Below, piece after piece: positions 4,112 to 64,000 of a DNA stretch of 64,000 nt. A program made the position numbers and the translations under genes. The number at the start of each line of letters is the position of its first letter. Within the stretch, counting starts at the first letter, position 1. The notes under the pieces were generated by a model that was not told the origin of the DNA, ran no database searches, and worked only from the letters and a program-made list of their open reading frames with translations. The DNA comes from Squalus acanthias (Eukaryota): NCBI GenBank assembly GCA_030390025.1, contig CM059430.1, positions 62,186,001-62,250,000 on the forward strand. Reading direction: 5' to 3'.

Positions 4112-4216
4112 TTATTCTGTACACTTTACCTTCCTTCTAGATTTTCCATTTTTCTCAGAACTAAGCAAAACGACGGTTGCGTACGTCAACGGGTTACCAA
4201 CAGCTTCTTGCAAGGT
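4112..4216 (-). CDS. Gene A terminal cytoplasmic exon with ITIM LTYATV
   Basis: TTTTATAG| TLQEAVGNPLTYATVVLLSSEKNGKSRRKVKCTE*; aligns with gene B terminal exon VTYATLELSGPEKAGKSKNNKMSAEY. Confidence 0.72.
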   Translation of the reverse strand, partial: TLQEAVGNPLTYATVVLLSSEKNGKSRRKVKCTE

Positions 4217-13200: not shown

Positions 13201-16200
13201 TGAAATTTCCGCCCAATTGCAGCCATTCCGGAGGAGGTTGTAGGTCAAAAACTGGAAATCTAAGTGCTCTGGAAATCAACATTAAATTGTAATATTTTTA
13301 ATATTGATGGGATTTTACAAAAATATCATATGGTGGATAATTTCCACTGTTCACTATTTGTAGCTAAATTTCTTACACGTTTCCCTTTCAATAATTAAAA
13401 AAGGAAATCTTCCCCTGTTTGGCAAAGAACCACTGACAGATTAATGGCAGACGTTTGTTTTGTAAGCAAAGTGACATCTTACCTGAGTTAGAATTAGGAA
13501 CCAAGTAAATTGCCATGGCTGGAAACTGGAGGGTCACGTGAGACACCAGACAGACGTAAACAGTCCCTCCCTGGACAGGCTGTGTCTCTTCAAAATAGCT
13601 GGAAGCTTCATACATCCCGGCTCTGCTGAGCTGTTTAATAGTATGTATTCCGGTTTCAATGCGTCGATTATTTTTGTACCAAGTGACAGCCAGTCCCACT
13701 GGGTAAAATGAAGCCATTTCACACACGAGAGCCAAAGAACCGAATACATTACTTTCAGATGGGTTGGAAACAATCCTCAGGGGAGTTGGAGGAGCTGGTG
13801 ACAGGTCGAAGAAGAAAGTTAAATATCTGGTCTATTCTGGAATTTCTGAAGTCGAATAGATAGGACTTCAGATCGGCTACAACCGTATCAGAGAAGTATA
13901 AATCTGTATGTTTATGGTATAGCGAAAGCATTACATTTTACTTATTGTAGATTATAGAATCATAGACAGGTACAGCACAGATGGAGGCTACTCAGCCCAT
14001 CGTGCTTGAGCCGTCTCTTTGGAAGTGCTGTCCAAGTAATCCCACTCCACAGCTCTTTCGTCATAACCCTGCAAATGTTCCCCTTCACGTATTTAACCAA
14101 TTCCCTTTTGAAGGTTGCTATTGAATCTGTTTCGTCCACCCTTTCAGGCAGTCCATTCCAGATCATAACAACTCGCTTCGTATTTTTCCCCTCATGTTGC
14201 TTCTGGTTCTTTTGCCCATTATGCCCAAAATTTATATAGCTCCCTCTATAAAACCTCGAAACCTAACTTTCCAGTGTTATCTCGTTATTGAGAACAATTT
14301 GAACGCGTTGGTGAAGCAGCTCCCTCGTCTCTGTAGCGAATAGAAGATGCGTTTCTGAAGGCCTTCTATGCCTACTATTCCCGACCCAAAGAAACCTTCA
14401 GAATGCACTCACACATTGTCGCTACATACAGTGAGCAGCGGAAGCGCAACCCCACACCCATCGCCCATCTTGTTATGGAGGTAACCCGAGAAATCAACAG
14501 CGGCGGCATAGCATCTTAGACTGATTTTTTCACAATTAGCCCCGTCCACGAAATGAATTATATTTCCAGCCACGAGGATTTTTACTCGTATTACTTGTAT
14601 GGTTTACAATAAACGTACAACATCACAATCAGGGATAATAACTAAAGGCGAACCTTCCACTTCACGGGTTACATCGGCGTGAGAGAAACATTTGTACCCG
14701 GAAAATAAGAACTGTGGCGAATGGACTTTGCACAACTCAGGGACACATTCACGACATTCTTTACCGGTGACATATTCGCTTTTGAAGGGGTTTGAGGAGA
14801 AAAAAATGATTTGGTTCGTCGACCAGAGGCTGAGAGAAGCTATTGACTGAAGAATAGGAAATACAGCCAGGCTTCCGATACTCTGATCTCTCAGTCCCAG
14901 AGAGCACAGTGTCAGCCGTGGCTCAGTGGTAGCACTTTTACCTCCTAGTAAGAAATTCCTGAGTTCTAAGCTCTACTCCAGATACTTCGGGGCATAATCA
15001 AGGCTGACCCTTCAGTGCATTACGGAGGAAGTGCTGCACTGTCGAAGTGATGTTTGGATAAGATATTAAACCTCGGCCCCTCTGCCCTCTCAGGTGAACA
15101 TAAAATATCCCACGGCACTATTCAAACAAGTGCATGGAAATTGTGCCGATGTCCTGGCCAATATTTAACCCTCAAGCACCATCATTAACGATCGAGTCAT
15201 TATCCCATTGTCGGACATTGCTATGTGCACATTGGCTGCCACGTTTTCCTACATTTAAACAGTGACTACATTTCAAAAGCATTTCAACTACATTGTAAAA
15301 CGCTTTGGGACACCAATTGCGCTACATACGTACAAGTTATTTCTTATTTATCGCAGCAGGAGCGGGGACACAATATTTAAAAATAATCACGTGGATTAAC
15401 TTCTGTGTACATGTTATAATTGAAATTAGACTTTATACTCGATAACAACACGGTTAGTGTGATAGTTTAGATGGTCATCTAACTGCAGCTTTAAACAGTT
15501 CAGGATATATTCAAATAAGGCTAATCAAAATGTTATTTATACTGAAAACCTTTCAAGTTATCACAATTTGTACTCGCACCTGTATGGCATGACAACGCTT
15601 CCTGCGCAAGCTTACAAGCATGAAATAACAGAACTAATTATTAATAAAACGATCAAGATGGTTTAAAAAAAGCACACAGATCTACATGTGTTGTATTTTA
15701 TAACTAGAATTTCTATAATTGAAGCATTTGATTTCTAATGTAAATTTTAAAGCAACACGAGGAAGAGTGGGGCATGCCATACTTCATTATTTATTTTGAA
15801 TAACTGTGAGACTATACCGCCGATACGCTCTTTACAATGTTCTTACCACTGACGACAAGCTTTGATCCGCTTCCATTTGCTTTCCTATTTCCCCGATGTG
15901 TCACTCCGCAGTGATAAACTCCAGAGTCCTGGAAACTGATATTCCGGAGCTGGAAGGAGGCTCTTCCTTTCTCAGTAAGAAATCGTTTCCTGGTGTCTGA
16001 GCCTAGTTTTATCAATTCATTTTCGCCAAGTTTCCACCAATAAATATTCACAACTGAATCGCCTTTCAAAACAGGAAATGTGCAATTGAAGACAATGTTT
16101 GTACCAGCGATCGAATTGGCATTTTCAGGGGCTTGGGTTACTTCAAACGGAGTATCGGCAGCAACTATTAAGAAAATGAACATTTATTACAGTTATAAAA

Positions 16201-27904: not shown

Positions 27905-28850
27905 AGGTGCCTGAGTATGGTGCTGTTTTTATTTACTACACACATAAATTATCTGTCCGTGAGAATTGAGGGATTCATTTCTAATGTTGTAGATAACACC
28001 TATTGGGAAAAGAAGGATGGAGAATTAGGATCGAGCATGTGGAATCCTGCAGGGGAACACTGATAGTCATCGCTGGATGGGCAATTAAACAACAGATGTA
28101 GAAGGCAGAGAAAGTTATAGTAATACATTTTGGAGAAAAAAGCGGAGAAACTAAACAATCCTTGAATAGTTGGATTTGAAATGGTGCAGAGGAGCAGTAA
28201 ACTTTGCGTGCGGATGCACAAGTCGTTAATGGTGATGCAATAAATGGCCGAACACAGTCCTTTTAGTTTTTGTCTAGCGGCATGAAATATAAAAATCTAG
28301 AGGTAATGTTGCACTTGACATTAGTTAGACTCTAATTGATGTGTTTTGGTATGATCATCCCATTACAAGAAGGATAGAGAAAGCATGGAAGGCGTGCAGC
28401 ATAGATTAACTGCTATGTTACCAGGAATGTGGGGTTAAAGTTATGGAGAGACTTGAAAAGCTGGGGCGTTCATCAACGCAACTGAGAAGATTAAGGGGTG
28501 CGCATGTAGTGGTTTTCAAGTTTGTGAAGGATTGTTGAATTATTACTACTGGCCGGTGGACGGTAACAAGTGGGCGCCAAGTTCACATAATCGCAAAATG
28601 GAGATGCAAAATACTCTTTACATAGACCATAGTAGAGTGTGCGGATTTTGAGTTGTCTGCCGTATTCCGTTGTTGAAGCAGATCATCTTTTTCATTGGGA
28701 AGGAGTTGCATGAAAAAGTGTAAAATGTAAGATTGTGAAGGGCGAAGAGGAGTATAGAATTAACTATATGGTTCAAGTGGAGAAAAACAATGTTGCAGAC
28801 TCTATGAGCCGAATAACCGGTTTCTATTCTCTAACATTCTAGGATTCTAA
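27905..28850 (+). mobile_element. Old degenerate CR1 fragment (paralogous remnant at ~57000-57450)
   Basis: Degenerate RT C-terminal sequence ending TTCTAGGATTCTAAA, also present next to gene C. Confidence 0.55.
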
Positions 28851-29968
28851 AATACTTGGTACTGTGTCTATGCTCCTGCTTGATAATGCAGACAGTCAAC
28901 CAACCATGATAGTTGCACGAAGCAAGAGGCAACTAATTCACTTCTTCTTGTATGGTTTTTAGATTCGGAGTCAAACACTTAGTCACTGGAACTGCTGAGC
29001 TACCATTCTTCTAGTATCAGTTGCACAATGTTCTAATCCTGTAATTTAGTTGATCTACTTCCCAAATACATCTCAATTTAACATTTTAAACCACGAGTTA
29101 TCCTTTCCTGATGCGGGAACCACTCTAAAAGGAGTGAGTGTTTGCAGTTCAATTCCCTTCTTCATTTAGGCTTGCTAAAGTCGAACCTCTATTGCATGTT
29201 AAGGGTGTAAATCAAACAGCCTGCTTATATCTCCCTTGACGAGGCCTCGCAACATTTTAAATACCTAGATCGTGGTTCATTCAATCTTTTCTACAACGAA
29301 AGAAATTGGCAGCCGTCACAAAGTTCAGGCAAGAGTGTCTCTTGTACCGTCAATCGTAAGTTGAGTTCAGAGAGTTTATGGATGAAGCCAGGGATTGAAA
29401 CTTCCTGTCCTCCACTCCAAGAGCATGGTCTGGAATAGGAGTTGACTACAGTGACACAAACCCTGAAGTCAGCACCCATTTTCTCAGTTTTGTTCCCAGA
29501 AGTAATTATCATATGTGTTATCGTTGAATTTTAAACGGGAGATGTAAGACATCCATTTGTATACATGGTGATAAATATTTACAGCATGTCAGTTAGCCTA
29601 TCATTCTAATTGAAATAGTATAGGATCGTCATATATTAAATAATACCGATTTAACTTGAAAATTATTTTTATTACAAGCATTTATATTTCTGTCTAATAA
29701 TCTCCAAATAATGAAACAATTAGCATATCTGCATTATATACTATGATACTAGAATGTATTACATCTTGGGGATTGGAGAACACGGATATACCTGCAGATG
29801 GAGATAATTAACACTTTCACTGCTTGGGCGGTAAACTACCCCGTCAGATCTTCGGCCCTTTATAGAAACCGCCAGGTTTTATTCTCCATTGAAATCAGTG
29901 AGTTGATATGGCTGCGGGATGAATCAATATACAACAATAAACTGATTAATGTGTCCAAGATTGTATCT

Positions 29969-30142
29969 CTATTTCGTTCTTGCATCTGTGTAGACGGCCT
30001 CTGTTACTCTTCTTGGAGTTTTCGTCTGTATCTCGGCATATTCTGCGCTCATTTTATTATTTTTAGATTTTCCCGCTTTCTCGGGGCCAGACAATTCTAG
30101 AGTCGCGTACGTCACCTTGTCCCGGGCTGTCCCTTGTTTTAT
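29969..30142 (-). CDS. Gene B terminal exon (ITIM VTYATL and AEYAEI)
   Basis: TTTTCAG| IKQGTARDKVTYATLELSGPEKAGKSKNNKMSAEYAEIQTKTPRRVTEAVYTDARTK*. Confidence 0.85.
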   Translation of the reverse strand: MKQGTARDKVTYATLELSGPEKAGKSKNNKMSAEYAEIQTKTPRRVTEAVYTDARTK

Positions 30143-33100
30143 CTGAAAAGCCAATGTTTGGAAATATTGTTGATTGATCGTTTTACCAGTTTCTGGTTTG
30201 CTGCTCAAGGCAGCCGGCAGAATAACACACAAAACGTTTTAGATACAACACACGGTGAAAGTCAGAACAGCCCCAAATACTCCGCTATTAGATTTATTTT
30301 AGTCCTCCACATGTGATCTGCGTTTCTCTTATCTGCTTCTCAGCCCCACCTGAGCATACGCTGAGCTCTCCTCTTCACGTTTAAATCTTGGAGTTTTCCT
30401 GGCTTTGCTCAAGTCTACTGCAGCATAAGCCACGATCTCGTCATTGGCTCCCTGCATGGGCCAGAAAGAAAATGTATTGTTATGTGGCTAGTTCATTGCC
30501 CTCACAAATTTACAAACTGCTGACCAAACAATAAACAGAATGACCTGGGCTACAAATAAAATGCAGAAACCACAGCTAATATATTTAAAGATGTGCGAAT
30601 ATTAAGGCCGGTAAATAGTGTGCCCATTGTAACTTACATTTCAACCTGTCGATTTTCAGTACAATACAGTGATACAGATATGTTTAAACAAGAGGTAGTT
30701 TCAGCATCATATCAGATTCCAGAAGCAACGTTTAGATGGATGTACACATAACGAATACCTAGTTATATGTTGAATGAAGCTACGGATTTCATTTTTCTCT
30801 TTCGTTAATCACTTACATCTGCATCGCAACAAGTGTGAAAACACGATTTGAATGACCCATCAAAGAGGGACAAATACTTTTGTGAAATAGATTTTGATGA
30901 AATATCCCCATCATAAGAATATTTATTTACACTGGAACACTATTCCTGGATAAATTATATGAACCTACCAGCTCTTCATGAGGGTCTAGTATTGTTATAC
31001 TTTCCTGTTTACCTGCAAATTAATGGAATTTAATTACATTCAATGATGAAAATGTTTATTCAGTTTCCATGTTTGCACTTTCAAAAGTATTTTGCAGTCA
31101 ATGAACCGCTTAACATGACTTTAGATATATAGGTTGACAGAGCAATGGCAGCTCTAATTCAACGCAGTGAAGAGTAGAGCGCTACAGCTAGGAAGAAAAA
31201 ATAAACTACACATGTACTTCATGGATTGTATTCAAATAGCTAAAGATGGAACTGAAAGAGACCTAGGGGTTTAGTAGACTGGACGCTAAACTTGACCATC
31301 CAATGCATAGCAGCAATGGACAAAGCCAATAGGCTGATGAACGACATAGGCAAAGCAGTAGAATGAAAGTCAGAGGAGGGCACGATCAAACTGTATAGTG
31401 CTCTTGTCACACGGACCATTGAATAATGTGACCAATTTAGGTCACTAATGGTCAAGCGCTAGTGCCAGTGCAGAGATGAGCCACCAGGCTGGTTTCCCAG
31501 GGTCAGGGGACTGAGCTATGAGGACACTCTGAATAAACGTGATCTTTTAGACTGGAAAGGAGGCGTCTCAGCTATGATCTTATGGAAACATATAAGATAG
31601 CTAAGCGTATAGAAAATGTTAATCCTCAGTTTTATTTCATTGATTCTCAGGACGTTGGTGTCGCTGACAAGGGCAGCATTTATTGTCCATCTTTAGTTGC
31701 CCTTAATTACAGACAACCGAACGGTATACAAGATCACTTCAGAGGGCAGTTAAGTGTTAACCATATTGGTATGTAACTGATGTGACATATAGGCCAGATC
31801 GGGTAAAAATGGCAAGTTTCCGTTTCTAAAGGACATTAATGAATTCCTTAGCATTTTATGACAACCCGACAGCCTCATAGTCACTTGTCTTTTACTGATA
31901 CCAGCTTTTTATTTCCACAATTTTTAAACTGCATCTAAACTCTCACAATGCCTTGGATGGGTTTACCCACCTTCTCGGGATTACAAAACCAGACCTTTGG
32001 ATTACCAGTTCAGTAACATAAGCACTACACTACCGTACCCGTTTAGTATCAGATATTTAACTGCGAGGCCTGAACTCGGGGACACTGGTAAAAAAACTAG
32101 CAAATGAGAATTGTAGGCATGATGCCAGGAAATTCTTCTTTACAGAGTGATCAACATGAGGAACAAAGTTCCACATACAGAAAATGAGGCAAACGACCTG
32201 AGATCCCTTAGCAAACATCTGGATTCTACACTGGGGAAACAGTCCATCTGTCGTGATGGACCAAATGACCTTCCTCATCAGCAGTTATTTTCTGATATTA
32301 CATTTTCCGGGCTGTTTTGAAAATCCGAATCAATGTAGCCATCTACAGTCGTGTACACCGACTCGCAACTGGACACTGACCCCACTTTACCCAAACTCGT
32401 CACAGGCCCCCAAACTGATGAAACAATCGATCAAATTGCACTTATCATCTGCCACAAAGTGGAAATTTTCGTTGTTAAAATCCAGATGATCAGATCCTTT
32501 AGAGTCTCATTCTGTGATAATTCTTTCATTATAAGATGCTGAATTCAGCGCAATTTGCAACATGCGATTTCTGTTCCTGTAGCATCAGATATCATAACCT
32601 GAACCTTTAAGTAATAATCGCGCTGCTCTCCTGCAGTGCCGGCCATGACGCGCTCTCTATCCCTCTAAAGATTTGTATTCAATCAAACGATTAACGCAAT
32701 ACTTACCTTTATTCTTCAAACTGCATCTCGCCCCAATGATGATCATGAGCACCAGAAGCGCCAATCCACCCAGCGCACATCCAAGACCCCAGATATAACG
32801 ATATTTACCATCAGATTCTGGAAGAGTAAAAGGATACATACTGATTTCTAATTTGTGGCTGTCGTTACCTGAAAAGATACATCGGGATAATTTGTTGGCT
32901 AAACTGCTGCTCATATTTACAGCAACTACGCAGTATAGCAAGAGAAGATGTTCATTTTGAAAATAACCTTACTTTAGCTTTTTAGATTTGATATCAAAAG
33001 AAACTTCTCACAAAAGAGTGATACACGGCCGGAATAATCTGCGAGGGAGGCAATTAGTTTAGGGTGCTCTGAGTGTTAGTATTTAGGAGAGTTAGAATTC

Positions 33101-35800
33101 CAGATGAATAATTTTCGATGGACAGAAAGGCTTGTTCTTGTACTTGACTTTTATTTTGCTCTCAAACGATTGTTTGATGAAATCGCGGCAATTCAGTGAC
33201 ACGTGACTCGCTATTGCCGAAGGAAAAGGCGGATTGTATCAATTGGGTTTAAATGCAAATTCAATTCTCTGCAGTGTATTTACTGAAGTAAAATTGTCAC
33301 TGAATAAGAAAGGAAACTCGCACAAGGTTATTTGTTAATTACAGAAAAATAGGTGTTAATAAACCGACATCTTGCAACCAATTGCAGTGCAAACACATCT
33401 GGGTCACAGTCTGAATGAAATGTATGAAACGGGTTCCCGCTCCAAACCTCTTTATCACGGAGCGGTTGTGTTACGGCCAGTCCACATGCTAATTCCTGAC
33501 CAATTCTGAGTGAATTGCCCAACAGCGGCCGGAATCATGAGCCGCACTGGGAGACATGGGAGACCAGAAAAAAGAACTGCCGCTTCTAGTCCTGAAACTC
33601 ATGGAAGGAAAGCAGATAATGGGAAAGAATAAAATCAATCTAACAAGAGTACAAATTTGAATGTTTAATAATAAGCAAGAGATGTAAAATAATTGGATGG
33701 AAGAGCTACACCACCTGCTCATTTTTTTTTACAATTTGGAAGCTACGGAGTTTTAAAACGCAGTTTCTGGATGGAGGGCGATAATAAGACTCTCGGTTTT
33801 ACAACAGGTTCGGGTCAATAATTTTTTACATTGAAACATTGATTTTCTCTTTGCTTTGATATTTGCTGGGAGCTTTTTTCTATCTTCATGGTTATCAATA
33901 TAAAAAACTCTATGAAATAGCCTTTCAGAATATAACAGTAGTTGACCTCAGTTCTTGGCCTTTTGGCCTCGTACCTGGGTCGGAATTAGCAACTGTGTGG
34001 ATGGCAATGACGGGAGTACCGAGGGAGACATGAGATACCAAACAAATGTAAACAGCCCCATTCGGCACAGGCTGCGTCTCTTCCAAAGAGCTGGAAACTT
34101 CATACAGTCCCACAGTGTTCAGCCGTTTAGTGGAATTTATCCCAGTTGCGGTTTCGACGCCATTTTTATACCAAACGAGGGTTAATTCGCCCGGGTAAAA
34201 CTCCGCCGTTTCACACACAAGAGTCAGAGACGCAGCTGAATTGCTCTCGGGTGTCCTGGAGACAATCTTCACTGGAGTTGGGGCAGCTGCGGAACAGACC
34301 ATGGGGAAAATCAGGTTACTGGGGAGATAGTAAACATAAGATAAGTTTGTTAGTAACCCTAGGTCTGTCTGTCTGTCTCCCCAAGAGAGAAATTAATAAT
34401 CTGTCCATTACCGATAATAAAGCAGGGCCGAAGAGGATATCGGACAGCTCACACAGCCGAAGCATGAGAACGGCTGAGCGAAATTACTTTCCCTTCAACC
34501 TCAAAAGGCTGCAACAACAGTCTCTGGGCAATGTTTTATTTATTGGAGGCGAAAGAGCTGCAAAATTGCTGTTCGTGGTCCACTTTGTTGAGTGAATCCA
34601 TTGATCAGCAGTTAAATTAAACTGATCTGAAGTCCGCCACGCGAATCAGCCTGTCAGTATGTGAGCATTAATTTCATAAGAGAGACTGTTAAACCTCATT
34701 TACAGCGATAGGGACAAACAGAATATCTAAAATGGAGCAAGTAACGTGTATATGACGGGAGTGGGGCATTAACAGAAAAGATTTTCAGTCAGTTATCAAT
34801 ATATTTGGAATTTGGTCCCCAACTTCCATCATCAGAATTCCGATGTAAACATACATATTGAGATGAATCGAGTAACATGTTACTTGCGACAGGTCATCGA
34901 CCTGAAGCGTTGACTCTGCTCCTTTCTCCACAGCTGCTGCCTGAACTGCTGAGTATTTCCAACATTTTCTGTTTATATTTCAGATTTCCAACATCCGCAG
35001 CATTTTGACTGAGTAACATGTTAATTATTCTGGTTATTTTGATGGCATTTTACACAACTAAGCAAATGATATTGTGCCGTATAATTAGCAGTTGTGTGCA
35101 GAGTTTCAGTGTAAATGTCTTAATATAATTGTTTTATAATATCAAAGACGGTGCAATTAAACAATGACAAAACATCAATCTCGCTACATTTGATACAATT
35201 GGACGTTCCCGCTCACTCCGGTCACTTACCGCACACAGTTAGATGTGATCCTGTTCCATTTCCAATAATTCTTCCCTGACGGATCACTGCGCAGTGATAG
35301 ATTCCAGAGTCCTGGAAAGTCACGTTCAGTAACTCAAAGAAACCGCCTCCTTTTTTTTTCAGAACAAATCGTTTTCTGTTATCGGCTCCTGTTTGCAGAT
35401 ATTCATTCTCATCATGTTTCCACCAGCGCACTTCTACCCCTGAATTGTCATGAGAAAGGGGGATTACGCAATGGAAGGTTATGTCTGTCCCCCTTAATTT
35501 AATTACTTGTTCGGGAGTTTGAGACACGCTGATCGAAGTATGCGCAGCAGCTGTTGAAAATATATTCAAAGTTTGGTTAATTGTATTCTATGCGGAATAA
35601 AACACTTTAAAATGCATTTCTACAAGGAAATGAAAATGAGAAAGAAGAATACAGACGGACTAACTGTACCCATTCATTTTGTGTGGTATCTGCTTCAGAT
35701 TTTTTACCGCGACGGTTGGGATAGAGAATAAACAGTTACCTGTGTAAATGATCCCCGGGAGAAACAGGAAAAGGGAAGGAAACATCACAGTCGACAACAT
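29969..35800 (-). CDS. Gene B: SIRPalpha-like inhibitory VJ-C1 Ig-superfamily receptor (7 exons, 374 aa)
   Basis: Exons 35800-35740, 35550-35230, 34286-33975, 32817-32707, 31012-30969, 30451-30350, 30142-29969; all GT-AG and phase-compatible, sum 1125 nt with no internal stop. Tail motifs VAYAAV, SAYAQI, VTYATL, AEYAEI (plus AVYTDA). Confidence 0.9.
30350..30451 (-). CDS. Gene B second cytoplasmic exon (ITIM VAYAAV and start of SAYAQ/I)
   Basis: CAG| GANDEIVAYAAVDLSKARKTPRFKREEESSAYAQ |GTGGG; 102 nt. Confidence 0.82.
30969..31012 (-). CDS. Gene B first cytoplasmic exon
   Basis: TTTGCAG| GKQESITILDPHEEL |GTAGG; 44 nt, phase 1-0, needed to link the TM exon to the phase-0 ITIM exon. Confidence 0.75.
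32707..32817 (-). CDS. Gene B transmembrane exon (uncharged TM core)
   Basis: ESDGKYRYIWGLGCALGGLALLVLMIIIGARCSLKNK; CAG| and |GTAAGT; 111 nt. Confidence 0.9.
33975..34286 (-). CDS. Gene B Ig C1-set exon
   Basis: AAPTPVKIVS...LVCETAEFYPGELTLVWYKNG...VYICLVSHVSL; 312 nt, same length as the gene A C1 exon. Confidence 0.92.
34883..35010. mobile_element. Short dispersed repeat (Penelope-type) with 13-bp target duplication; hairpin-arranged relative at ~48870-49060
   Basis: GAGTAACATGTTA at 34870-34882 and 35011-35023; core GGTCATCGACCTGAA...GCTGCCTG...GCTGAG. Confidence 0.55.
35230..35550 (-). CDS. Gene B Ig V-set exon (VJ type)
   Basis: SVSQTP...TFHC...RWWK...DSGIYHCAV...IGNGTGSHLTVC; 321 nt, phase 1-1. 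Confidence 0.92.
35740..35800 (-). CDS. Gene B leader exon
   Basis: MLSTVMFPSLFLFLPGIIYT then phase-1 donor G|GTAACT. Confidence 0.8.
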
Positions 35801-36934: not shown

Positions 36935-38775
36935 ATGGCTGATCCCACTCCCAGGGAGAGAGCACATCACATCACGGAAGAAGCATTGGAAGCATTGATC
37001 GTGGGAGTGGAGCAATGGAGGGCAGTGCTGTTCCCGAACACTGGAAGGAAGCAATTGTCCCAGATCTTCAGGGCATTGAGAAGTGAAGTGGCTCAGGAAC
37101 TCTCGGCCAGTAGTGTGGTCACCCACAGCCTGAAACAGTGCCGGAAGAAATTCAACGACCTAACTCGGGTGGTCAAGGTGAGTAGATGCTTCAAAAGGTC
37201 CTACATGCCAGCATCTCTACCTCAGTCTGTACACACCGCACAGCACAAACCACCACACCCTCACCACTCACCCACCAAGCATCTGCACCTACTTAAACTC
37301 ACATCCACATCTCATGCCTTGACTACAATCACAGCTATTCAACTACGACAGCCATATCTACCAAACACGTAGCTGGACTCTGACTCACACACATTCGTTT
37401 ATTTGCAAGCCAAGATTGCCCAAAATAGGAGGGAGTACAAGTGAACAGGCATGGGTGCTGTGCAGCTGCAGCAGCTTTCAGACCTGGAGGTGCGAGTGCT
37501 GCGACTCAATGGGCAGAAGGTCGTGGGCTCCATGGCCCTCGGCAAAATCAAACCCCTTGGGGGCAAGCACCGTATGTTCATCTCCTCTCCTTGTCTCATC
37601 CCACTTCTCCCTTGCACATCAAGCCTTTCCGAATTTCCAGCTCCTGATACTGTCTGCATTCCTTGTTCCCTTCCTGCCCCACTGCCCTCACCTTAAAGCG
37701 AGTCTTGTGCCTTTATGCTTTCAGATAATCAGCAGCCAGATGACCAGCCTGTCCCTGAGCATCCCATTGAGAGTGAGGAAGGAGAAGAGCAGGAGAAATA
37801 AAGCAGCGCATCACTGCATCTCTCAGCCGCAGGCACCAACTCAGATACTGGCACTACGCGATCTTTAGAGGCATGTTTAGTAGAGGGGTCTGCACTGGGT
37901 GATGCACCGGGGAAGAGCGGGCTGCAGCAAGGCCAGGGGAAAAGGTTAGCCTGGGAGCCATCTCCCCGGAGGGCGAGGTCATGTGTGAGTGCTGCTGTGC
38001 AGGACTCAGATGAGGACATCGATGGGGAGGCGATCACAAGAAGGCTGATGGGCATGCACACTGAGATGATAGGTGATGAGAGGCTGTCGGCAATGGTAAG
38101 GAGCGTCGAGCAGTCCGCCTCCATCATTACACAGAGCTTTGCGCACACCATGGAGCCCATCCTTGGCAGTCTGCAAATGATGGTGGACTCCCTGAGAGAC
38201 CATGGAGACCCAGACATCATACTGCATGTCATGGGCGATGTGGCAGCATCCATTGCAGCACAGGTGGAAGCCACGCCACGTTGTATTGCTGTAATGCAGT
38301 CAATGGTTGATGCCATCGATTCTCAAACTGCTCTCATGCAGTCTGACTGCTGCTAACATCGCTGGGTCCATCTCAGTCCACCGGGGATTTCACGGTTTCG
38401 CAGCTGCCCAGTAATTTGCGTTGCAGCAGATTGATAGGGATGCTCAGGTGCTACCCTGGGTGTGTGTCAGTGGAGCAGGAACCTGCTGCCCTCTCTCAGG
38501 ATGGCAGCCTTCCTGCTCCCATCACTGCGATTCCGCCATTGCCCTTGCTGCTGCCTGTCATCAAGCCAGGCTAGCCTGACGTCGCCCATCCTGAAGTGGT
38601 GCAGTGTACAGCTGGCCCTTCCAGGCCCAGAGCTGGCCGAGGACCTCCTGCAAGGCCACCTGTAGTCTCTGGCACCGACACTCAGCAGCCTTCCACCAGC
38701 CCTGCAGCAGCTATTGGGGAGACACTACGTAGGAGCAGCAGATTAGGGAAAGGCATTGTGAAGAGGGCAAATAAG
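36935..38775 (+). pseudogene. Harbinger Myb/SANT-like gene (spliced, decayed)
   Basis: Exon 1 36935-37177 MADPTPRERAHHITEEALEALIVGVEQ...QCRKKFNDLTRVVK|GTGAGT; later exons homologous to element 1, with stops. Confidence 0.75.
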
Positions 38776-38949
38776 GGTTTGCACAAGGGTCTTTAATTAT
38801 ATTGTTGTTTTATATATGTGGTTATTGACTTTGGATACATTTATTATTGAAATCTCACAGAGATGCTGCTGTGTCACATTTCAGCTTTGGGGTGTGGTAT
38901 GGAATGAGATATTTATGGAATGATAGGGATTGGATGAGCAGCTGGGAAG

Positions 38950-40114
38950 TGGCATTGAATTCATTGGAACCGAAGTCACGGATCGCCCTTCCACAAGGCT
39001 GATGAATTGGCTGGCTCCTACATCGCTGCTGTTCGTGCTCCTGTTCCTCCTCGTCCTTCTCGTCCTGCTCCTCCTCGTCTCCCTCTTCCTCTTCCTGAGG
39101 TGCTGCGGCTATGCCTGGTGGTAATGGCTGCGCCCTTAGGATGGCCAAGTTGTGCAGCATGCAGCAGACGACGACGAAAAGTGACACCCATTCAGCCGAG
39201 TATTGGAGGGCTCCTCCTGAGCGGGGAAGGCAGCAGAACCATTGCTTGAGCACTCCCATGGTCTGCTCAATTATGTTCCTGGTGGCAGCATGGCTCACTG
39301 TGTGAGTAATGAGCACGAGTGTTGGGGTTGCGGTGGGGAGTCATGCGCCAGGTGGAGAGCGGATAGCCCTTGTTTCCCAGCAGCCATCCGTAAACTTGAT
39401 GTGGTGTCTGGAACAGAGCAGGCATGGGTTGAAGGCGTTTTGGCTGTTGCCAGGATAGAGGGCATTGATGGTGAGTATGCGCTGTGTGTGGTCACACACG
39501 AACTGCACATTATGTGAGTGGTAGCCTTTACGGTTACAGAATAACTCAGGATTGTTATGAGGTGCCCACAAAGCAACGTGGGTTCAGTCAATTGTGCCCT
39601 ACATCATGGGGAAGCCCGCTATCCTGGAAAAGCCACATGAATGCTCATGCTGCTTCTCTCTGGTCCTGGAAAAGGAAATGTAATCCCTTCTCCTTCTGTA
39701 GAGAGCGTCTGTGACCTCGCAGATGCAGCAATGGATGGCAAACTGTGCTATGTTAGATATGTCTCCTGTTGCACACTGGAATGATCTGCTGGTGTAGAAA
39801 TTGAGGGCGATGGTGACCTTGACTGCCACTGAGAGAGCCGTGGTATTCCCGAATTGAGGCTCAAGGTCAGGCGGCAGGAGGTGACAGAGATCCGTGACCA
39901 GGCCCTTGGTGAAGCGGAGCATTCTAAGACACTGCTCCTCAGTTATATTGATGTAGGAGAAATGCTGCCAGAGCATCCTGGGAGGGTAAGTCCTCCTGTT
40001 TAGAGCCCGGTTGGCCCTCCTCCCTCTGGCCACATTTTGCAATCTTTCTCTCTGCCTCCGCTGCCTCCTACATTGACGCTGGAGGTCGAGGTCCAGTGGC
40101 AGAACAGCATCCAT
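38950..40114 (-). pseudogene. Harbinger DDE transposase (HARBI1-like), disrupted
   Basis: LRFTK, ALNFYTSRSFQ, AGFP, NRKGYHSHNVQFVCD, YPG, HAATRNIIEQTMGVLKQWFCCL, VCCMLHNL motifs; stop and frameshifts. Confidence 0.88.
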
Positions 40115-41769
40115 TAAATTATGGAAATGTTGCACTTTTAAATCTCACCAAAATGGAATTGATAAAGTTTTCTCCCGAGGCAGAAGACTCCTTCAAGTGG
40201 AAAACGCTGAATTCGCTCAAAACGCCTGTTTGCCTATGTCATACTTACAAGGCAGCATTCTTTGCCGACTAAAAAAAAAACAGAGGTTGACGCCTTTAAA
40301 TAGGCTCCTCCAGCGCTCATGCGACTGCATACCGCCTCCACTACCTGTCCTTGCTACCGTCAGGTGCTCAGGCAGGGGGCGAGACTGAATTTCAGAGCTG
40401 GGGCGCTACCGGGGTGCTACCGGGGTGCTGCACACCCAGTTGACATCATGATCTCAGAGCGCAGGAGATTGTGGCGCTATTGGCTACTGCCGCCGCAAAC
40501 CTCCACCTGAATTTGGCGGGCGTCCGTACTATCGCCGCCACCGGTTACGCCCCATTCGTGCCCCCCGGAGGCGCTATCGCGAGGCGCTAAGGCAATAAAT
40601 TTCTCCCAATTGGAGCCAAATAGTGGAAGCCATGATTAAACTGTGCAAATTGGTTTGATAGCGGATACCTTAGCTAGATAAAAAAGTGCATCTAATGAGC
40701 TTCCAGATCAAGAGCTTAATCGGCAAAATTATGTGAAGAAAAGTGAGCGGTAATGTTCTCATTCGAGTGCATGGAAGGTTTCACTGTGATTTGAAGGGTA
40801 TTCTAAAGTGCCCTAATATTGCACGTGTCTACGGACGCCATACTTTAAAATGTAGGTAAGGCTTTGTGCGTTACGTCACAAATTATTACTTATACCCTCC
40901 CGATTGTTATAAGTAATCACTCACTCATCAGTTTATCTGAGGGATTTGGCCAAGTATGGAGAGTAGTGAATGCCGCCAATCAAAACCAGAACCCCCCATA
41001 GGATCCAACAACAAGAACAATCTGTATTTTATAGCGCCTTTAATATAGAAGAAAACGTCCCAAGAGTCTCGGCAAAATCGGAATAAAATGGACGTTGAAC
41101 CAAAGAAAGAAACACTACCACGTGCGACCTAAATCTTGGACAAAGAAGTGGGAATCAGTCACCTTTTAAAGTCATACATTCCATCGTAAGTTTTCTGTTT
41201 TTCCAACAGAAATTCCTGTACCCACATTTATACTGCAAACTGCACTGCCGAGGTAAACTTGTCAAGCTCTAATTACACCGTCCTGCTAATCATGGCCTTC
41301 ACTGGTGACAAGGTGTGCCGACATTTGACAAGTTTATTTTGGCAATTTCCAATAATCAAGTGGAGGTATAAATTTATAATGGTTGACGGTAACATGACAT
41401 GCGCAACGCTGTTAGATTTATTACTTTGTTCTCCCACTGAATCATGTCGGCATTCGGGCCAGTCACAGGATCAGGACACACTGGGAAATGGACCAAGGTG
41501 TGAAGTACATGATTGGTGTGGTAGTATTTCGCAGTATATTTTGGGGTGGAGTAGGGTAAGCTTTGGTCAAATGGTCGGGTAGCACTAGATGGGAAGTCCC
41601 AATGCTCTTGCCCAATACAAGAAGAGGAAAATTGTCCCTTTTAATTTGTTTTAATGTAACTTGAATTCCCGTCCTCGTCATTTTATTTGTAGGATAAATA
41701 ATGTCCAGCAACTGAAACTGCTGAAATATTCCACAGAATGATTTAACCTTGTTCACGATGAACTACTTA

Positions 41770-56620: not shown

Positions 56621-58432
56621 TATGGAGGTAATTTAGCAGAAATAAACTTAAGAAGAAACACTCAACAGCTTCCCACCAATCAGCACCTCCATCTTTAGAT
56701 ATGCTATGAACTACTTAGCAGAAATATACTGAAAACAGAACAACAACACTTACCACAAATACTTTCCCTATACTCACCTCTCAGCTCCCTTGTGCCAGCG
56801 ACACCTTTTGAATTCTGACGTCACTCTTTCGTTTTGTCGATGCCAACTGTTTCCCTCGCAGGTAGTCCGCTGGCTCAGTCTCTCTCTGCATCGCGCTGCC
56901 TTTATCCACGGTCGCGGACTCCGTTCCTGCCGCAGGTCTGCTCGCTCAGACTCGATACTATGAAAGAATACAAAAGCAAATTACAAAGGTCCGTCTAAAT
57001 GGCCAAGAATGGAGAGTTACTATTAGAGAAGCACGGACTTTTTTAACTGGAGCTGAAAAAAATGATGAGTGACCTAATAGAGGTTTTCAACATTATGAGG
57101 CGTTATGATAAGCAAATAGTGATAGAATATTTCCAATGACCAGTAGACGGTTCCGCGTGAGCATAACTTTAACACAATCGCAAAAAATGAAGAGGTAAAA
57201 TACTCTTTGCACAGAGGCTGGTTAGAATATGAGCTGTGGACGTTCTCTGCCACAAAACATTGTTGCATCACTGCCCAGGAATTCTTTTAGAAGTGAATTA
57301 GTTGTTTGAAAAAGAGGAATATTAAAGTTATTAGAAATCTAAAAGGAAAATGGAACTCCCTAATTATTTCATATGGGGAGAAAAAAGGTACAGATTTTAG
57401 AGACGCGTGATCTGAATCTGTGCTGTAACATTCTAGGATTCCAAATTGCTTGTTAATGCACACAGACATCAAACCAGAACAGTTAGGCCGAGCAAGAGGC
57501 AGCGGTTTCACTTCGTCTTGTATTATCTTAAAATTTGGAGCTAAAGGCTTAGTCACTGGAACTGTTGGACTGCCTTTCTTCCAGTAACTAGCCGTAAATG
57601 TTCTATCCCTATCATTCAAGTGATCTACTTCCTCAATACTCACAGTTTAATCGTGGAAACGGCTAGTCAATCTTCAGCTAACGAGGCAGCCACGCTACAA
57701 TAGATAAATCGCTGTAGTTCTATTCTCTTTCTTGAGGCAACCTCTAGTTGCATGTCAAACCTTACAATCTGCTAATATCGACATTTTCCACGGCTTTGAA
57801 CTTTTTAAATCCTGCATCACTGTTAATTCGGACCTTTCCCCAATAAAAATGCATTCAGCTCTGTAGGGATTTTCTTACAAGTTCAGTACTATATCCCGGA
57901 TTCATTATTGTTGCTCGTCTGGGAACTCTCTAGAAGCACTATCCTTTTGAAGACAAAATCTAATGAGAACAATCGAGGCTATTCCTTTGGTAGCAACTTG
58001 AAATTGTCTGGGCGCATCGCTTCAAATAGGAATGGATAGTCATACAGAATTTAGAGAAAGGCATCTCATCCTCCATCATCTGCACGCTGTGTTCAGAGGG
58101 TTTATGGATTGGTCCAAATCAGGAGAATCGCCTGCACTTGAAGACAGGACACAGTAACGGAACACACAAATCAAAACACACAAAGCTTTACTCGGCAAGA
58201 AAATCACGGATGGTTGATTGATAAGAGAGATCTAATAATCTTTTTTTTATTGAATTGATGTATGAGGATAACTCGATACAGCAAAACAATTAGCGTATCA
58301 TTGCTGATATTTGTCATATATTAAGTACTACAGATTGATCAAAAATGTAAAAGCAAGGTTCATTTTATTACAAGTACTTAAATGAAAATTTCTCAAATAT
58401 TTAAGCAATAACAAACAATTACACCTACAATC

Positions 58433-58837
58433 TATGATATAGTACTGAAATTAGTTACTCTGTTTTCATTTGTTATTTTTGGGTTTCCTCGATTTTTTGG
58501 AGCCTGACAATCCTAGCGTCACGTAAGTCACTTGTTTGTTCGGTAAATCCGTGTATGGAAGGAATGTTTATGGGTCGGTTTGCCAGTTTCTTTTCTGCTG
58601 CTCATCAGAATAACACACAAAAAACCTGAGCTACAATACACGACTAGAGTCAGCCAACCATATATTCTCCATTATCGCATGAATGTTGGTGCTACTGTGG
58701 TGATCTGTGTCTGTCTCATCCACTTCTCAGCCCCGCCTGAGGGTACGCGGCACTCTCCTGTTCAAGTTTAAGACTTGAAGTTGACATAATGCTGCTCAAA
58801 TCTATTGCAGCATATTAGCGATTTGAGCCTTTGCTTC
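58433..58837 (-). pseudogene. Decayed ITIM exons of gene C
   Basis: 58837-58737 is a 101-nt copy of the 102-nt gene B exon, with a 1-nt deletion before the first Tyr and donor GT>GC. The terminal exon remnant keeps VTYVTL (58531-58514) but lacks its AG acceptor and the later Tyr motifs. Confidence 0.8.
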
Positions 58838-59233
58838 CTATATGGACCAGAAACAAAATATGTTGTTATGTGTCTGTTTCATTGCTTTCACCAGTTCACG
58901 TGCTGCTGCTGAAACATTGAACAGAACGACCTGGGCTGGAGATAAAGCACAAAAACCATAATGAATATCTTAAAATAAGTACGAATATAAAGGCCGATGA
59001 TTACTGCAATCACTGTAACTAATATTTAATCATGTCGATGTTCTCTCTGCAACACAGTTACAGACATCTTTAATGTGCAGCAGTTCTAGAATACGAATGC
59101 ATTAAGATTTTTACCCCCCCAAAAAACAAAGATCATTGATTCTATAAACAATTATTACCGAGGTACAGTTTCAACGAAACTGACAGTTTTCTCTTGTGCT
59201 CTTTAAACATTTATAACAGCACCCATCGGGAGC

Positions 59234-59337
59234 GGGGGAGAAATTGGTCTTCGGCGGGAGCGAAATGGGCGAAAGCGAATCAGCAACCCGTTGCACACCG
59301 CGCCCGATTTTGTTTTCGGAAGACCAATTTCATCCCC
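59234..59337. mobile_element. ~100-bp MITE-like element (related copy ~12290-12418)
   Basis: TIR GGGGAGAAATTGGTCTTC ... GAAGACCAATTTCATCCCC; nearly the same right end at ~12400-12418. Confidence 0.55.
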
Positions 59338-59461
59338 GAGCTCCCGGTGTTAAATATTTTTCTAAACACGATTTGAATGAGCCATTACGCGGGACAAATA
59401 CTGTTAGAAAATAGACAAACTGTTCTGACATGATTATGATATAATCTCTCCATTACAGCAA

Positions 59462-59550
59462 TCATTCTTCGTATTTCAACCCTTTGCGGAGATGCATGAA
59501 TGAACATTTCGGATCTTCACTGCGTAGCGGTCCCTTTACACCTTTTTCAC
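59462..59550 (-). CDS. Gene C first cytoplasmic exon, donor lost, predicted read-through short tail
   Basis: Intact acceptor TTCACAG|. At the position of the gene B donor (GTAGGTTCA) the sequence is AAATGTTCA. Read-through gives GEKGVKGPLRSEDPKCSFMHLRKGLKYEE*. Confidence 0.6.
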
Positions 59551-59948
59551 CTGTGAATTAATGACGTTTACACATAATGAATGATAGAAGTATTTACTCA
59601 GTTTCAATATCAGCGTTTTCAAAGACATTTCTAGAGAAGGTGCAAAGCCGAACAGGATTCTCAATTTCAGATTTTGCAGACAGTGTTTGAAATCGTAGCC
59701 CCTGTAGCGAGCAGCAATGGTCTTCAGCCATTTCGGGCCGGAGGCTCACCGCTTCACTCGAACTAATTGAGGACTCCCAACGGACTGGTTTGGAAAGTGA
59801 TTGTGTGTCTGAGCAAATTTCTTTTACCACTTGCTGCAAAGTGGAAATTTCAGTTGCATATATACAAATAATCAGATCCATTTTTAATTTGATTGTTGGA
59901 GTATTTCTGCGTGTTGTGCTAAAATCAAAGGCTTACAGCAGATCTTAC

Positions 59949-60062
59949 CTTTATTAATCTGAAATTGGCAGTGCGTCCCAATGATGATCAGGAGAACTAG
60001 AAACGCCAATCCACCCACCGCATATCTAAAATACGAGTAGTACGGGGACATACCGACATTAT
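59949..60062 (-). CDS. Gene C transmembrane exon with Arg (5' exons presumably beyond the window end)
   Basis: TTGCAG| DNVGMSPYYSYFRYAVGGLAFLVLLIIIGTHCQFQINK |GTAAG; open 114-nt exon homologous to the gene B TM exon; flanking intron 60240-60630 resembles 33020-33440. Confidence 0.85.
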
Positions 60063-61149
60063 CTGCAAGATTAATAGGAGCATATATATTATTGTATATT
60101 ATGGTGGGTGTTTTGTAAACAGAGGCCTAAGCAGAGTTAATTGGTTAATCTAATGGTGTTTGCAGTATCTCCGCAGTATAGCACGGAAAATGAAGCTTAA
60201 ATTAATATTTTTTTACAGAAAATATTACAGCGAACTTCATCATCGAATGGATGAGATGCTTCTGGAATAATCTGCGAAGCGGGTCCCGAATTTAAGGCTT
60301 TCGAACACTGTCGCAGCGGAGGTAGAATACGAGAGGGACACGTTTCCTTGAAACGAATGGTTTGTTATTTTTCTTGATTTTATTATGTTCTTTGCTTAAT
60401 TGTTTGACGGTGACAATTGTTTCGCCGTTGCCAGCATAAATGCCGAATTGCAGAAAACGGTTGAACCACTAAATCACTCTGCATGTATTGAAGTAAGAAT
60501 GTCACTAAATAGTAAAGGAGATCAACGCGGGGTGGTTTATTAATTATTGTCTGGTGAGGCAAACAGTTGTTATTAAAACAATGTAAGCGGCTGTACTGCA
60601 GTCAGGCTGTTAGCACAGTTTAAGTGAAATGTGTGAAACAGGTCCAACCCGCAATGCCATGGAGGGGTAAGGGGTACGTGTTGGCCAGTGGGTTAATTTC
60701 AGAACTCTTTACAAGGGTTCGCCGGAAGGGAGATCATGATCGGGAACTGCATTGGGAGAATCCCAGGCGCAGGCATCTTCAATGCAGCTCCTGATAACAC
60801 ACTTGATGCAGGAAAACTAGATAATGTAAGATAATAAAACCATTTTAACATGGAAAGAAAGAAAAAATGATTATTAACGGGCAGAATGTGAAATATAATG
60901 GAGCAACAAAGATAAACATCTTGGTGGTATTTAGCTGAAGTATCCGAAAGTGGGGTCAGGATCGGGAACTGCATTGGGAGAAATCTCAGAGCAAACAACA
61001 TGACTGTAGCTCTTGGTAACAGTCTTGCAAGGAGAACAGACAATGGTAAAGAACAAAACAATATTATCATGGAAACAGACGAAACTGGAAATTATTATTC
61101 ATAATAAGTAGGTGAGGAAATATAATCGGACAAAATATACATTGCTGCT

Positions 61150-61785
61150 TATGTTTCCAAGGGGTTGGTGTATAAGAGTAAGAAAGTCTTGCTTCAATTA
61201 TATTGGGATTTGGTGAGACAGCACCCGGTGTACTGTTTACCGTTTTGGCCTCCTTACCTACGGAAGTATATACTTGCCTTAGAGGGAGTGCAACGAAGGT
61301 TCATTAGTTTGATTCCTGGAATGAGAGGTGTGTCCTATGAGGAGCGATTGAATAGAATGGGCCTATATTCTCTGGAGTTTAGAAAAATGAAAGGTGATAT
61401 CGTTGAAATGTATAACATTCTTAGAGGGCTTGATAGGGTAGATGCTGAGAGGATGTTTCCCTCGGTTTGAGAATCTAGAACTAGTCGTCATAATCTCAGG
61501 ATAAGGGGTCGGCCATATAGGACTGAGATGAGGAGAAATTTATTCATTCAGATTGTTGTGAATCTTCGAAATTCTCTACCCCAGTGGGCTGTGGATGCTC
61601 AGTCGATGAAAATATTCAAGACAGGGATCGATAGATTTTTGGGCACTAAGGGAATCAAGGAATATGGGGATAGGATGGGAAAGTGGAGTTGAGGTAGAAG
61701 GTATTGAAGTATTGAATGGTGGAGCAGATTCGATGGGCCGTATGGACTACTGCTGCTCCTATTTCTTATGTTAATATGTTCTTAT
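61150..61785 (+). mobile_element. CR1 LINE 3' fragment
   Basis: LALEGVQRRFISLIPG...; TTCTTATG-type tail. Confidence 0.85.
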
Positions 61786-61879
61786 ATTTATCATACATCA
61801 AATAGAGAAACTTGCAATCAAATAAAGTTTGACTGAGAATATATGTGTGGCGGGCGATATAACCCATTTTACAACACAT

Positions 61880-63610
61880 CGGGTTGTTTTGGTCCACGTG
61901 GAACAAACTACATAGGTAGCAACAGGTAGGAGGTCCTGCTGAAGTCAGGAGCTAAATTGAAATGCAGGACATCGAGGGTAACAACCGTTGGATTATTACC
62001 CGAGCCACGTGCAAATTGGCATAGAAGCAGTCAGATTAGAGCAGTCAGATCAGATTAGTGGCTAAAGGGATGGTGTGGGAAAGAGGGTTCCTTTTCATGG
62101 GACACTGGCACCAGTACTGGGACAGGAAGTAGCTGTACCAATGGGATGGGCGCCACCTGAACCGGGATGGGACCCGTGTCCTAGCAGAAAGGGTGCATAG
62201 GGACGTGGCAAAGGCTTTAAATTAGTAAGATGGGGGGAGGGATACACAAGAAATGAAACCAGCTTAAATATAAACAAAACAGGAAATGAGAGCTTAGGAA
62301 AGAATAAAGTAAGGGAGTACATTGATAGCCAGGGAATAAATAGAGTTATAGAACAGGTGTGTGAAAAGATGGTTAAAAATGAAGTGAAAGTAAATGCTAT
62401 TAAAAATGTCTGGACAGCACACAGTGACCGTAATAAAACAGGGGAGCTGGAGGCAATCATGCATTGTGTGGAGCCAGACATAGTTGGGATTACTGAGACA
62501 TGGTTACAGAAAAATCAGGGCTGGGAATTAAAGATTGCAGGGCAGAACATATTTAGAAAAGATAGAGAGGGGAAAAGGGGAGGTGGAGTATCTGTACTTA
62601 TTAGGGATATCATAATAGCAGTAGAAAAAATTGACGCAGCTATAAGCATGACAGAAATAGAATGCATGTGGATAGAGATAAAAGATGATGAAGGGTAAAT
62701 CGCACTAATCGGGGTAGTCAACAGGCCACCTAATAGTGGAAGGGATGTGGAGGATGAAATATGCAAACAAATTAGGAAAATTATTAAAAAACTTAGAATA
62801 ATAATCATGGGGGATTTCAACTATCCAGATATTAATTGGACAGAAGAGGTCGGTAAAGGGGATAAGGGAATGGAGTTCCTACAATGTGTACAGGACTCCT
62901 TTCTAACCCAATATTTAAAAAGCCCAAGAAGGGAGGATTCGCTATTGGATCTAGTAATGGGGAATGAACCAGAGCAGATAAGAGAAGTAAAAGTAGGGGA
63001 ACATCTAGGCAATATTGACCATGATATAATACTCTTTAAAATAATAATTGAGAAGGACATAAGTATAACAAAGTCCATGGTAATATGGTAGAGAAAAGCT
63101 GAGGTTGAGGGGCTGAGAATAGAAATTGGGAAAATAAAATGGTCAAAGATATTGGCAAACAATGACATAAAACAACAATGGGAATCATTTAAAACTGTGT
63201 TCAACAGAGTCCAGGAAAAATATATTCTGCTAAAAAAACAAGAACAAGCTAAACACTACTGAGACACCATGGATGAATAAAGATATAATGGAAAATTGAG
63301 CGTAAGGAAAGAGGCATACATTAAGTACATGGACAGCAGAAGAGAGCATGATAAGGGAACATACGAGGAGATTAGGAGAGAAGTCAAAAAAAGGAAAAGC
63401 AAACAGGAACTATGAAATTAAATTTTCAAGGAACATAAAACAAAATAATAAAATATTTTACAGGCACATCAATAAAAAGGAAGGTCGAGTTGGGAATAGA
63501 GCCACTAAGGGATGGAAAGGGAAATACCACAGGCAGTGATAGAGAGATGGCAGAAATATTAAATAATTACTTTGCCTCTATATTTTCCAGGGAGATAGAA
63601 CAGGTGGATA
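61880..63610 (+). mobile_element. CR1 LINE fragment (end of ORF1 esterase plus ORF2 endonuclease)
   Basis: DIVGITETWL, GGGV, IIMGDFNYPDINW, LLDLVMGN. Confidence 0.85.
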
Positions 63611-63960
63611 TAAGAACATCAGAACATAAGAAATAGGAGCAGGAGTAGGCCATTCGGCCCTTCGAGCCTGCACCGCCATTTAATGAGATCATGGCTGATC
63701 TTCTGCCTCAACTCCATTCACCGGCCCTATCGCCATATCCCTTGATGCCCTTACTAGTCAGAAATCTATCGACTTCTGTTTCGAATATACACAATGACTG
63801 AGCCTCCACAGCCCTCTGGGGTAGTGAATTCCAAAGATTCACCACCATCTGTTGGAAGACATTTCTTCTCATCTCAGTCCTGAATGGCCTACACTTTATC
63901 TTGAGGCTGTGGCCCCTGGTTCTAGACTCCCCAGCCAAGGGAAACATTCTCCCAGCACCA
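63611..63960 (-). mobile_element. CR1 LINE 3' fragment
   Basis: RTRGH...VVNLWNSLPQRAV. Confidence 0.82.
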
Positions 63961-64000
63961 TGACATTGGATCATGAGATTAGTAATTAAGTAGCTGCATT

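Follow-up and report, generated by a model that had tools for sequence, protein, structure and literature searches.

A putative inhibitory-to-activating conversion in a V-C1 receptor family of cartilaginous fish, read from a transmembrane exon of Squalus acanthias

Mammals and birds offer well-documented cases of paired activating and inhibitory receptors, which are thought to be driven by pathogen pressure. Activating KIR and SIRPbeta arose from an inhibitory ancestor by the gain of a charge in the transmembrane (TM) segment and the truncation of the cytoplasmic tail. Here we analysed 64,000 nucleotides of Squalus acanthias DNA (the window; contig CM059430.1, positions 62,186,001 to 62,250,000), which hold three head-to-tail genes, A, B and C, all on the minus strand and clustered in tandem within 56 kb. 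Gene C, present in the window as its TM exon and the material past that exon, encodes Arg near the outer end of the TM segment at a position where its neighbours encode Gly, and its tail is free of ITIMs (inhibitory motifs of the immunoreceptor tyrosine-based type). No description of this shark family as paired receptors was found in the open-access literature, a search that did not extend to subscription journals or supplements.

An earlier note on this DNA had proposed that gene C followed the inhibitory-to-activating route. Its reading of the DNA stands as regards the ITIM-bearing ancestry, the Arg, the ITIM-free tail and the ITIM exon remains downstream, while the activity and the adaptor would be expectations drawn from these features. 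As an evolutionary event in the lineage of gene C, the conversion is well supported by the comparisons below. Taken as a whole, gene C is best explained as the converted, activating-type 3' module of a V(J)-C1-TM family, a reading that we consider moderately probable.

The Gly-to-Arg codon and the broken tail of gene C

The features of gene C, together with those of the two neighbours that serve as comparators, are as follows.

59949 to 60062, minus strand: gene C stalk/TM exon of 114 nt, in phase 1 at each end; its acceptor (AG) and donor (GTAAGA) are intact
60025 to 60027, minus strand: gene C Arg codon AGA; the aligned codon is GGA (Gly) in genes A and B
59510 to 59550, minus strand: gene C equivalent of tail exon cy1; acceptor kept, donor lost (AAATG for GTAGG)
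59462 to 59509, minus strand: read-through of the former intron in gene C, ...KCSFMHLRKGLKYEE, with its stop at 59462-59464
58737 to 58837, minus strand: remnant of gene C cy2 (first ITIM exon); acceptor kept; tblastn match 58737-58814, E 1.5e-5
58469 to 58534, minus strand: remnant of gene C cy3 (last ITIM exon); VTYVTL still coded; tblastn E 4.5e-5
29969 to 35548, minus strand: gene B, intact, the inhibitory comparator; V 35228-35548, C1 33976-34287, TM 32707-32817
Minus strand: gene B tail exons cy1 (30969-31012), cy2 (30350-30451; VAYAAV, SAYAQ|I) and cy3 (29969-30142; VTYATL, AEYAEI)
11994 to 16159, minus strand: gene A, the second comparator; V 15845-16159, C1 13484-13792, TM 11994-12113

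Genes B and C are paralogues that align colinearly for about 5 kb (28443-33697 versus 57009-60902; blastn E down to 1e-92), so their alignment is not due to chance. The TM exon of gene C is a 37-codon open frame encoding ...YYSYFRYAVGGLAFLVLLIIIGTHCQFQINK, and both this exon and the next acceptor (CAG before 59550) proved intact, as the earlier note had claimed, with the frame open and the AG and GT kept. The Gly-to-Arg replacement was likewise borne out. Gene C reads AGA at 60025-60027 where gene B reads GGA, and gene A also reads GGA, which gives the change its polarity from Gly to Arg. The description of this change as a single base holds for the Gly/Arg codon itself; it does not hold for the 18-residue stretch quoted in its support, in which five further residues differ from gene B.

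Everything beyond the cy1 acceptor is damaged in the ways that the earlier note had listed, and each lesion was recovered. After position 59510 gene C reads AAATG where gene B reads GTAGG, so that the cy1 donor is gone; read-through yields GEKGVKGPLRSEDPKCSFMHLRKGLKYEE, a short ITIM-free tail ending ...LKYEE and followed by the stop at 59462-59464. ATTAAA signals lie downstream of this stop, at 59074 and 59030. In cy2, one nucleotide is deleted between 58816 and 58815, directly ahead of the first ITIM Tyr codon; this brings a stop into frame, and the donor is GC where that of gene B is GT. The cy3 remnant has no acceptor CAG, 19-20 nt are deleted upstream of it, and homology with gene B ends soon after. 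The loss of ITIMs in the Arg-bearing gene is thus accounted for by the missing cy1 donor, the read-through stop and the broken ITIM exons.

These features suggest the following path. Gene C would be the 3' module of a long-established member of the non-rearranging V(J)-C1-TM receptors of cartilaginous fish, which have a SIRP-like layout, and its ancestor probably carried a multi-ITIM tail as in gene B. In the C lineage, AGA (Arg) would have replaced GGA (Gly) at one codon of the outer TM end, the tail would have shortened, and the ITIM exons would since have decayed as unused DNA. Should splicing join the TM exon to V and C1 exons upstream of the window, a type I receptor with an ITIM-free tail of ~30 residues would result. 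Its Arg is predicted to lie four to five residues into the outer membrane leaflet, or at its edge. By analogy with mammalian Arg receptors, this residue would dock an adaptor bearing Asp and an ITAM (an activation motif of the immunoreceptor tyrosine-based type), and the inhibitory receptor would become an activating partner.

Arginine and tail motifs among relatives in cartilaginous fish

Genes A and B each have a V-set exon, which contains the J-like motif G-x-G-T, then a single C1-set exon and a stalk/TM exon, and Pfam assigns V-set (E 1.3e-10 and 2.9e-7) and C1-set (E 9e-12 and 1.4e-9) domains to A and B, respectively. Window exons entered the searches unjoined rather than as a spliced model. 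A profile built from the C1 exons of A and B was run against 1.84 billion representative proteins and gave 806 matches at E<=0.001. Many of these are V-C1-TM proteins of sharks, rays and elephant fish, named SHPS-1-like, SIRP-beta-1-like or tapasin-related-like by the automatic annotation of NCBI.

We aligned the TM segments of 69 database relatives with those of the three window genes. Arg occupies the column of gene C in 16 of the 69 relatives, and the tails of these 16 measure 7-82 residues; 11 of the 16 lack an ITIM-like motif, and another four match such a motif once, in tails of at most 56 residues. A non-redundant set of 54 relatives remained after the removal of 15 rows, namely seven isoforms or near-copies (P0151, P0152, P0153, P0154, P0016, P0155, P0167), the fused model P0161, and seven rows with poorly aligned TM segments (P0057, P0112, P0127, P0140, P0077, P0033, P0073). 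In this set, 12 of 13 Arg rows are ITIM-less, versus 12 of 41 rows with another residue (Fisher p 7.5e-5).

Because relatives share traits, the association was also evaluated on an ectodomain tree of the 54. There, Arg rows are sisters of ITIM rows, and the Arg state requires 12 changes, at least 10 of them forced by well-supported branches. In ~7.3 of 10 independent pairs the ITIMs are lost on the Arg side, in 0.3 on the other side, and in 2.4 the two sides do not differ (sign test, median p 0.016, range 0.004-0.22). The switch column recurs in sharks, rays and a chimaera.

A second tree was made from 40 columns of the TM exon with the Arg column excluded; it left out a similar list of rows, plus P0175 and P0039. 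Arg TM segments are placed among the Gly TM segments of their own sub-lineages, with 8 changes on the best tree. Its supported branches force 1 change only, which, on this tree by itself, is compatible with a single origin of Arg; a repeated origin is therefore likely rather than proven. We also considered a single ancient Arg lineage with exchange of ectodomains, which is less favoured than repeated Gly-to-Arg change, given the 8 changes that the best TM tree needs. On these comparisons, a repeated Gly-to-Arg origin across the family appears likely.

The catshark Scyliorhinus canicula holds the nearest counterpart of gene C. Its protein XP_038661932.1 (P0059) matches the TM exon of C at 22 of 27 residues, including the Arg, and the two share a stalk motif that occurs nowhere else in the set. 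They are sisters on the 40-column TM tree, which is weak overall (SH-aLRT 94 for this pair). P0059 is modelled as V-C1-TM(Arg) and ends 6 residues past the TM segment. A second catshark set is of the gene B type: P0176 has Gly and ITIMs, and P0166 and P0177 have Arg at the column of gene C and a short tail. P0176 and P0177 differ by 6 mismatches in ~211 ectodomain residues (~97% identical) and agree at 24 of 38 positions in the TM exon. From the sequences, this B-type set looks as paired receptors usually do when their ectodomains are kept similar.

The conversion is no one-off accident, because the Arg and ITIM loss are linked across the family, gene C has a counterpart in P0059, and catshark genes of the B type show the switch once more. 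Judged from these alignments, gene C is one instance of a recurrent family pattern. The plainest alternative is that gene C is an ordinary pseudogene and its Gly-to-Arg change one meaningless random substitution in a decaying copy. The divergence of C from B is like that of non-coding DNA throughout, and within the 18-residue stretch six residues rather than one are changed relative to B; both points speak for that view. However, the Arg falls exactly on the recurrent switch column of the family, and gene C and the catshark protein model have in common both the Arg and the distinctive stalk motif. An ordinary pseudogene is disfavoured, and we consider it highly improbable.

Some relatives were observed beside this comparison. 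P0161 of Scyliorhinus torazame (413 aa) joins a C-type V, 82% identical to that of P0059, to an A-type V-C1-TM; it may be a mis-joined model or hint at two adjacent genes in that species. P0115, a Logan contig of 955 nt, has a single frame that runs from C1 into an Arg TM segment ending IGTHCQ, as in gene C. Since C1 and TM are separate exons in the window genes, P0115 is probably the spliced transcript of an Arg-type member.

A second TM type combines Arg at the column of gene C with Asp-His at the inner end of the helix and short tails, and it stands apart on the TM tree. It was seen in P0012, P0052, P0068/P0182, P0082/P0183-P0185 and P0168, and in P0015 with Gln; the hosts are Heptranchias, Heterodontus, Chiloscyllium, Scyliorhinus and Callorhinchus. 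Two opposite charges within one TM segment are unusual, and this TM lineage does look old.

Constraint, upstream DNA and the membrane position of the arginine

Several observations weigh against gene C as a converted, activating-type module and are set out in this section with the two alternatives to which most of them belong. Among the 16 Arg relatives, P0087 is the sole one with a long tail and an ITIM. The modelled N-terminus of P0059 has no obvious signal peptide, and a region-limited search with its TM segment for other C-type TM segments returned P0059 alone.

The first alternative accepts that the conversion was real in the lineage of C and holds that the copy in the window is a dead relic, its TM exon cut off by transposon insertions and unexpressed. 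It draws on the DNA upstream of the TM exon, which is laid out as follows.

60903 to 64000, no strand assigned: what was the intron between C1 and TM in gene C, now full of interspersed repeats
61126 to 61790 and 63608 to 63957: 3' pieces of long interspersed nuclear elements (LINEs) in this former intron
62699 to 63088: open reading frame (ORF) of a LINE endonuclease in this former intron

Homology between B and C stops ~270 nt before the expected site of the C1 exon of gene C, and the DNA upstream of the TM exon is repeat-rich for at least 3.9 kb, to the end of the window. In tblastn searches of the window with the V and C1 exons of A and B, only A and B themselves were matched; within these 3.9 kb, no V or C1 exon of C was found and LINE pieces fill the space. 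On the other side, LINE insertions are often tolerated in introns. A direct duplication (60722-60875 and 60944-61099, 73% identical) was noted just upstream of the TM exon, where the homology with B ends.

Sequence divergence bears on the same alternative. At the nucleotide level the TM exons of B and C are 69.4% identical; the figure is 69.3% for cy2, 75.0% for cy3, 53.7% for cy1 and 64.3% for non-coding DNA (2716 aligned positions). The TM exon is thus no closer to B than the dead cy2 and cy3 are, and it lies near the non-coding level, as expected of a relic. The earlier note had suggested comparing the mutation load of the TM and ITIM exons; this comparison did not discriminate (69.4% versus 69.3% and 75.0%), and it does not separate live from dead exons.

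The exons do differ in the kind of change that they carry. The TM exon and its three splice dinucleotides carry none, where ~2.9 are expected neutrally, while the tail exons carry at least 5. We simulated neutral decay in 20,000 trials, using the rates of substitution and indels seen where non-coding DNA of B and C aligns. The frame and the three splice dinucleotides stayed intact in 6% of trials (P = 0.06), and the open TM frame alone with P 0.25. Chance survival at this level leaves room for a relic; however, neither the TM exon nor its three splice dinucleotides have been hit, whereas all exons further on are broken. The intactness of the TM exon is suggestive of constraint, not decisive. 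Gene C and P0059 agree at 81% of 27 residues, and gene B and its catshark orthologue P0176 at 72% of 36, so the TM exon of C is no less conserved across species than that of a working, functional gene. Overall, we regard a dead relic as unlikely.

The second alternative is that gene C is expressed and not coupled to an adaptor. In this case, the Arg would be juxtamembrane, outside the membrane, and the product an ITIM-less, signalling-null decoy for the ligand that its inhibitory relatives bind. On the Kyte-Doolittle scale the best hydrophobic windows of C begin directly after the Arg, which suits a decoy; an octanol-scale window disagrees and places the Arg ~five residues inside the TM segment. 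Homology with the 21-residue TM span of B would make the Arg the fifth helix residue. With two hydropathy scales in conflict, the Arg may lie inside the membrane or just outside it. Type I TM helices normally have few basic residues on their outer flank, and a strong and repeated link between Arg and ITIM loss at one column is unexpected for a neutral flank residue. ITIM loss is also common among members that have no Arg (12 of 41), as a decoy would have it. A 2014 survey that reported no FcRgamma in cartilaginous fish (PMC4016189) likewise suits a decoy. Taken together, we find a decoy quite unlikely.

Returning to the conversion, the reported absence of FcRgamma means that the Arg receptors would need CD3zeta outside T cells or an undescribed ITAM adaptor. 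CD247 is expressed in bamboo-shark T cells, according to a published study (PMC11372145). It is possible, and we put it forward tentatively, that the Gly/Arg toggle together with tail loss repeatedly made activating partners across cartilaginous fish (8 to 12 changes on the best trees), with one of these two adaptors. If so, adaptor-coupled paired receptors would reach to the base of the jawed vertebrates. The recurrent switch column offers a testable handle on the age of adaptor-coupled activation and on the adaptor that cartilaginous fish use. Within this single shark locus, the whole conversion path appears legible, from an intact inhibitory neighbour in gene B, through a one-base Gly-to-Arg change, to decayed ITIM exons still in place.

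The remaining observations concern the neighbours of gene C. In gene B, the exons cy2 (30350-30451) and cy3 (29969-30142), both on the minus strand, are alike (tblastn E 0.002-0.009), and the likeness points to an internal duplication of an exon. An intact-looking terminal exon at 4112-4216 (minus strand) encodes ...LTYATV... and has an acceptor and a stop; it sits 7.8 kb below the TM exon of gene A, beyond a transposon-like stretch. The nearest relatives of gene A are P0027 and P0180 of Mobula, which have short tails without an ITIM and a Lys/Arg three residues outside the column of gene C. A transposon-like element is present in two copies (~4600-10300 and 37400-40400) with long, similar ORFs, one of which matches DDE_Tnp_4 (Harbinger-type) weakly and under the Pfam cut-off (E 4.5e-4).

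Comparison with described receptor systems

Sequence searches of the PDB bear on how specific the likeness to known proteins is. The V exon gave 21 matches at E<=0.01 with no SIRP among them, and orthology with SIRP is therefore not shown; the SIRP-like names of the relatives come from NCBI automatic annotation alone. For the C1 exon, the best 60 of 7557 matches are headed by the IgA heavy chain, UrIg2 and MHC class II beta. Accordingly, these searches did not single out SIRP over other VJ-C1 proteins.

UrIg and UrIg2 share with the genes described here a germline-joined VJ exon followed by one or more C1-set domains, and they are non-rearranging and from elasmobranchs. UrIg2 (PDB 9dmx) is among the best 60 of the 7557 PDB matches of the gene B C1 exon (E 8e-11). 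We considered UrIg/UrIg2 as the family itself and ruled it out. In nurse shark, UrIg2 is described with nine C1-type domains, in a text that does not mention an ITIM (PMC12227049), whereas the genes here have one C1 and occur in ITIM and Arg forms.

The predicted product of gene C also recalls several mammalian receptors. NKp46, FcalphaRI, GPVI, LILRA and OSCAR have an Arg near the extracellular end of the TM segment and a short tail free of signalling motifs; these receptors, which use FcRgamma or CD3zeta, differ in that their ectodomains are unrelated to those of the shark family. Activating KIR (KIR2DS/3DS) resemble gene C, as interpreted here, in an inhibitory ancestor, a charge gained in the TM segment, a truncated tail and leftover ITIM-coding DNA downstream. 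They are primate-specific, with C2-type Ig domains and a mid-TM Lys that serves DAP12, in contrast to the V-C1 domains and Arg of the genes of cartilaginous fish.

SIRPalpha and SIRPbeta1 are comparable in overall layout. The shark genes have one C1, not two, and their Arg lies at the outer TM end and not at the more central position of the DAP12-binding Lys. In other respects the two systems agree: an N-terminal V with a J-like G-x-G-T motif is followed by C1-set sequence, the tails of inhibitory members have several tyrosines within ITIM-like motifs, and their partners combine near-identical ectodomains with a basic residue of the TM segment (in the shark family in it or next to it) and a short tail.

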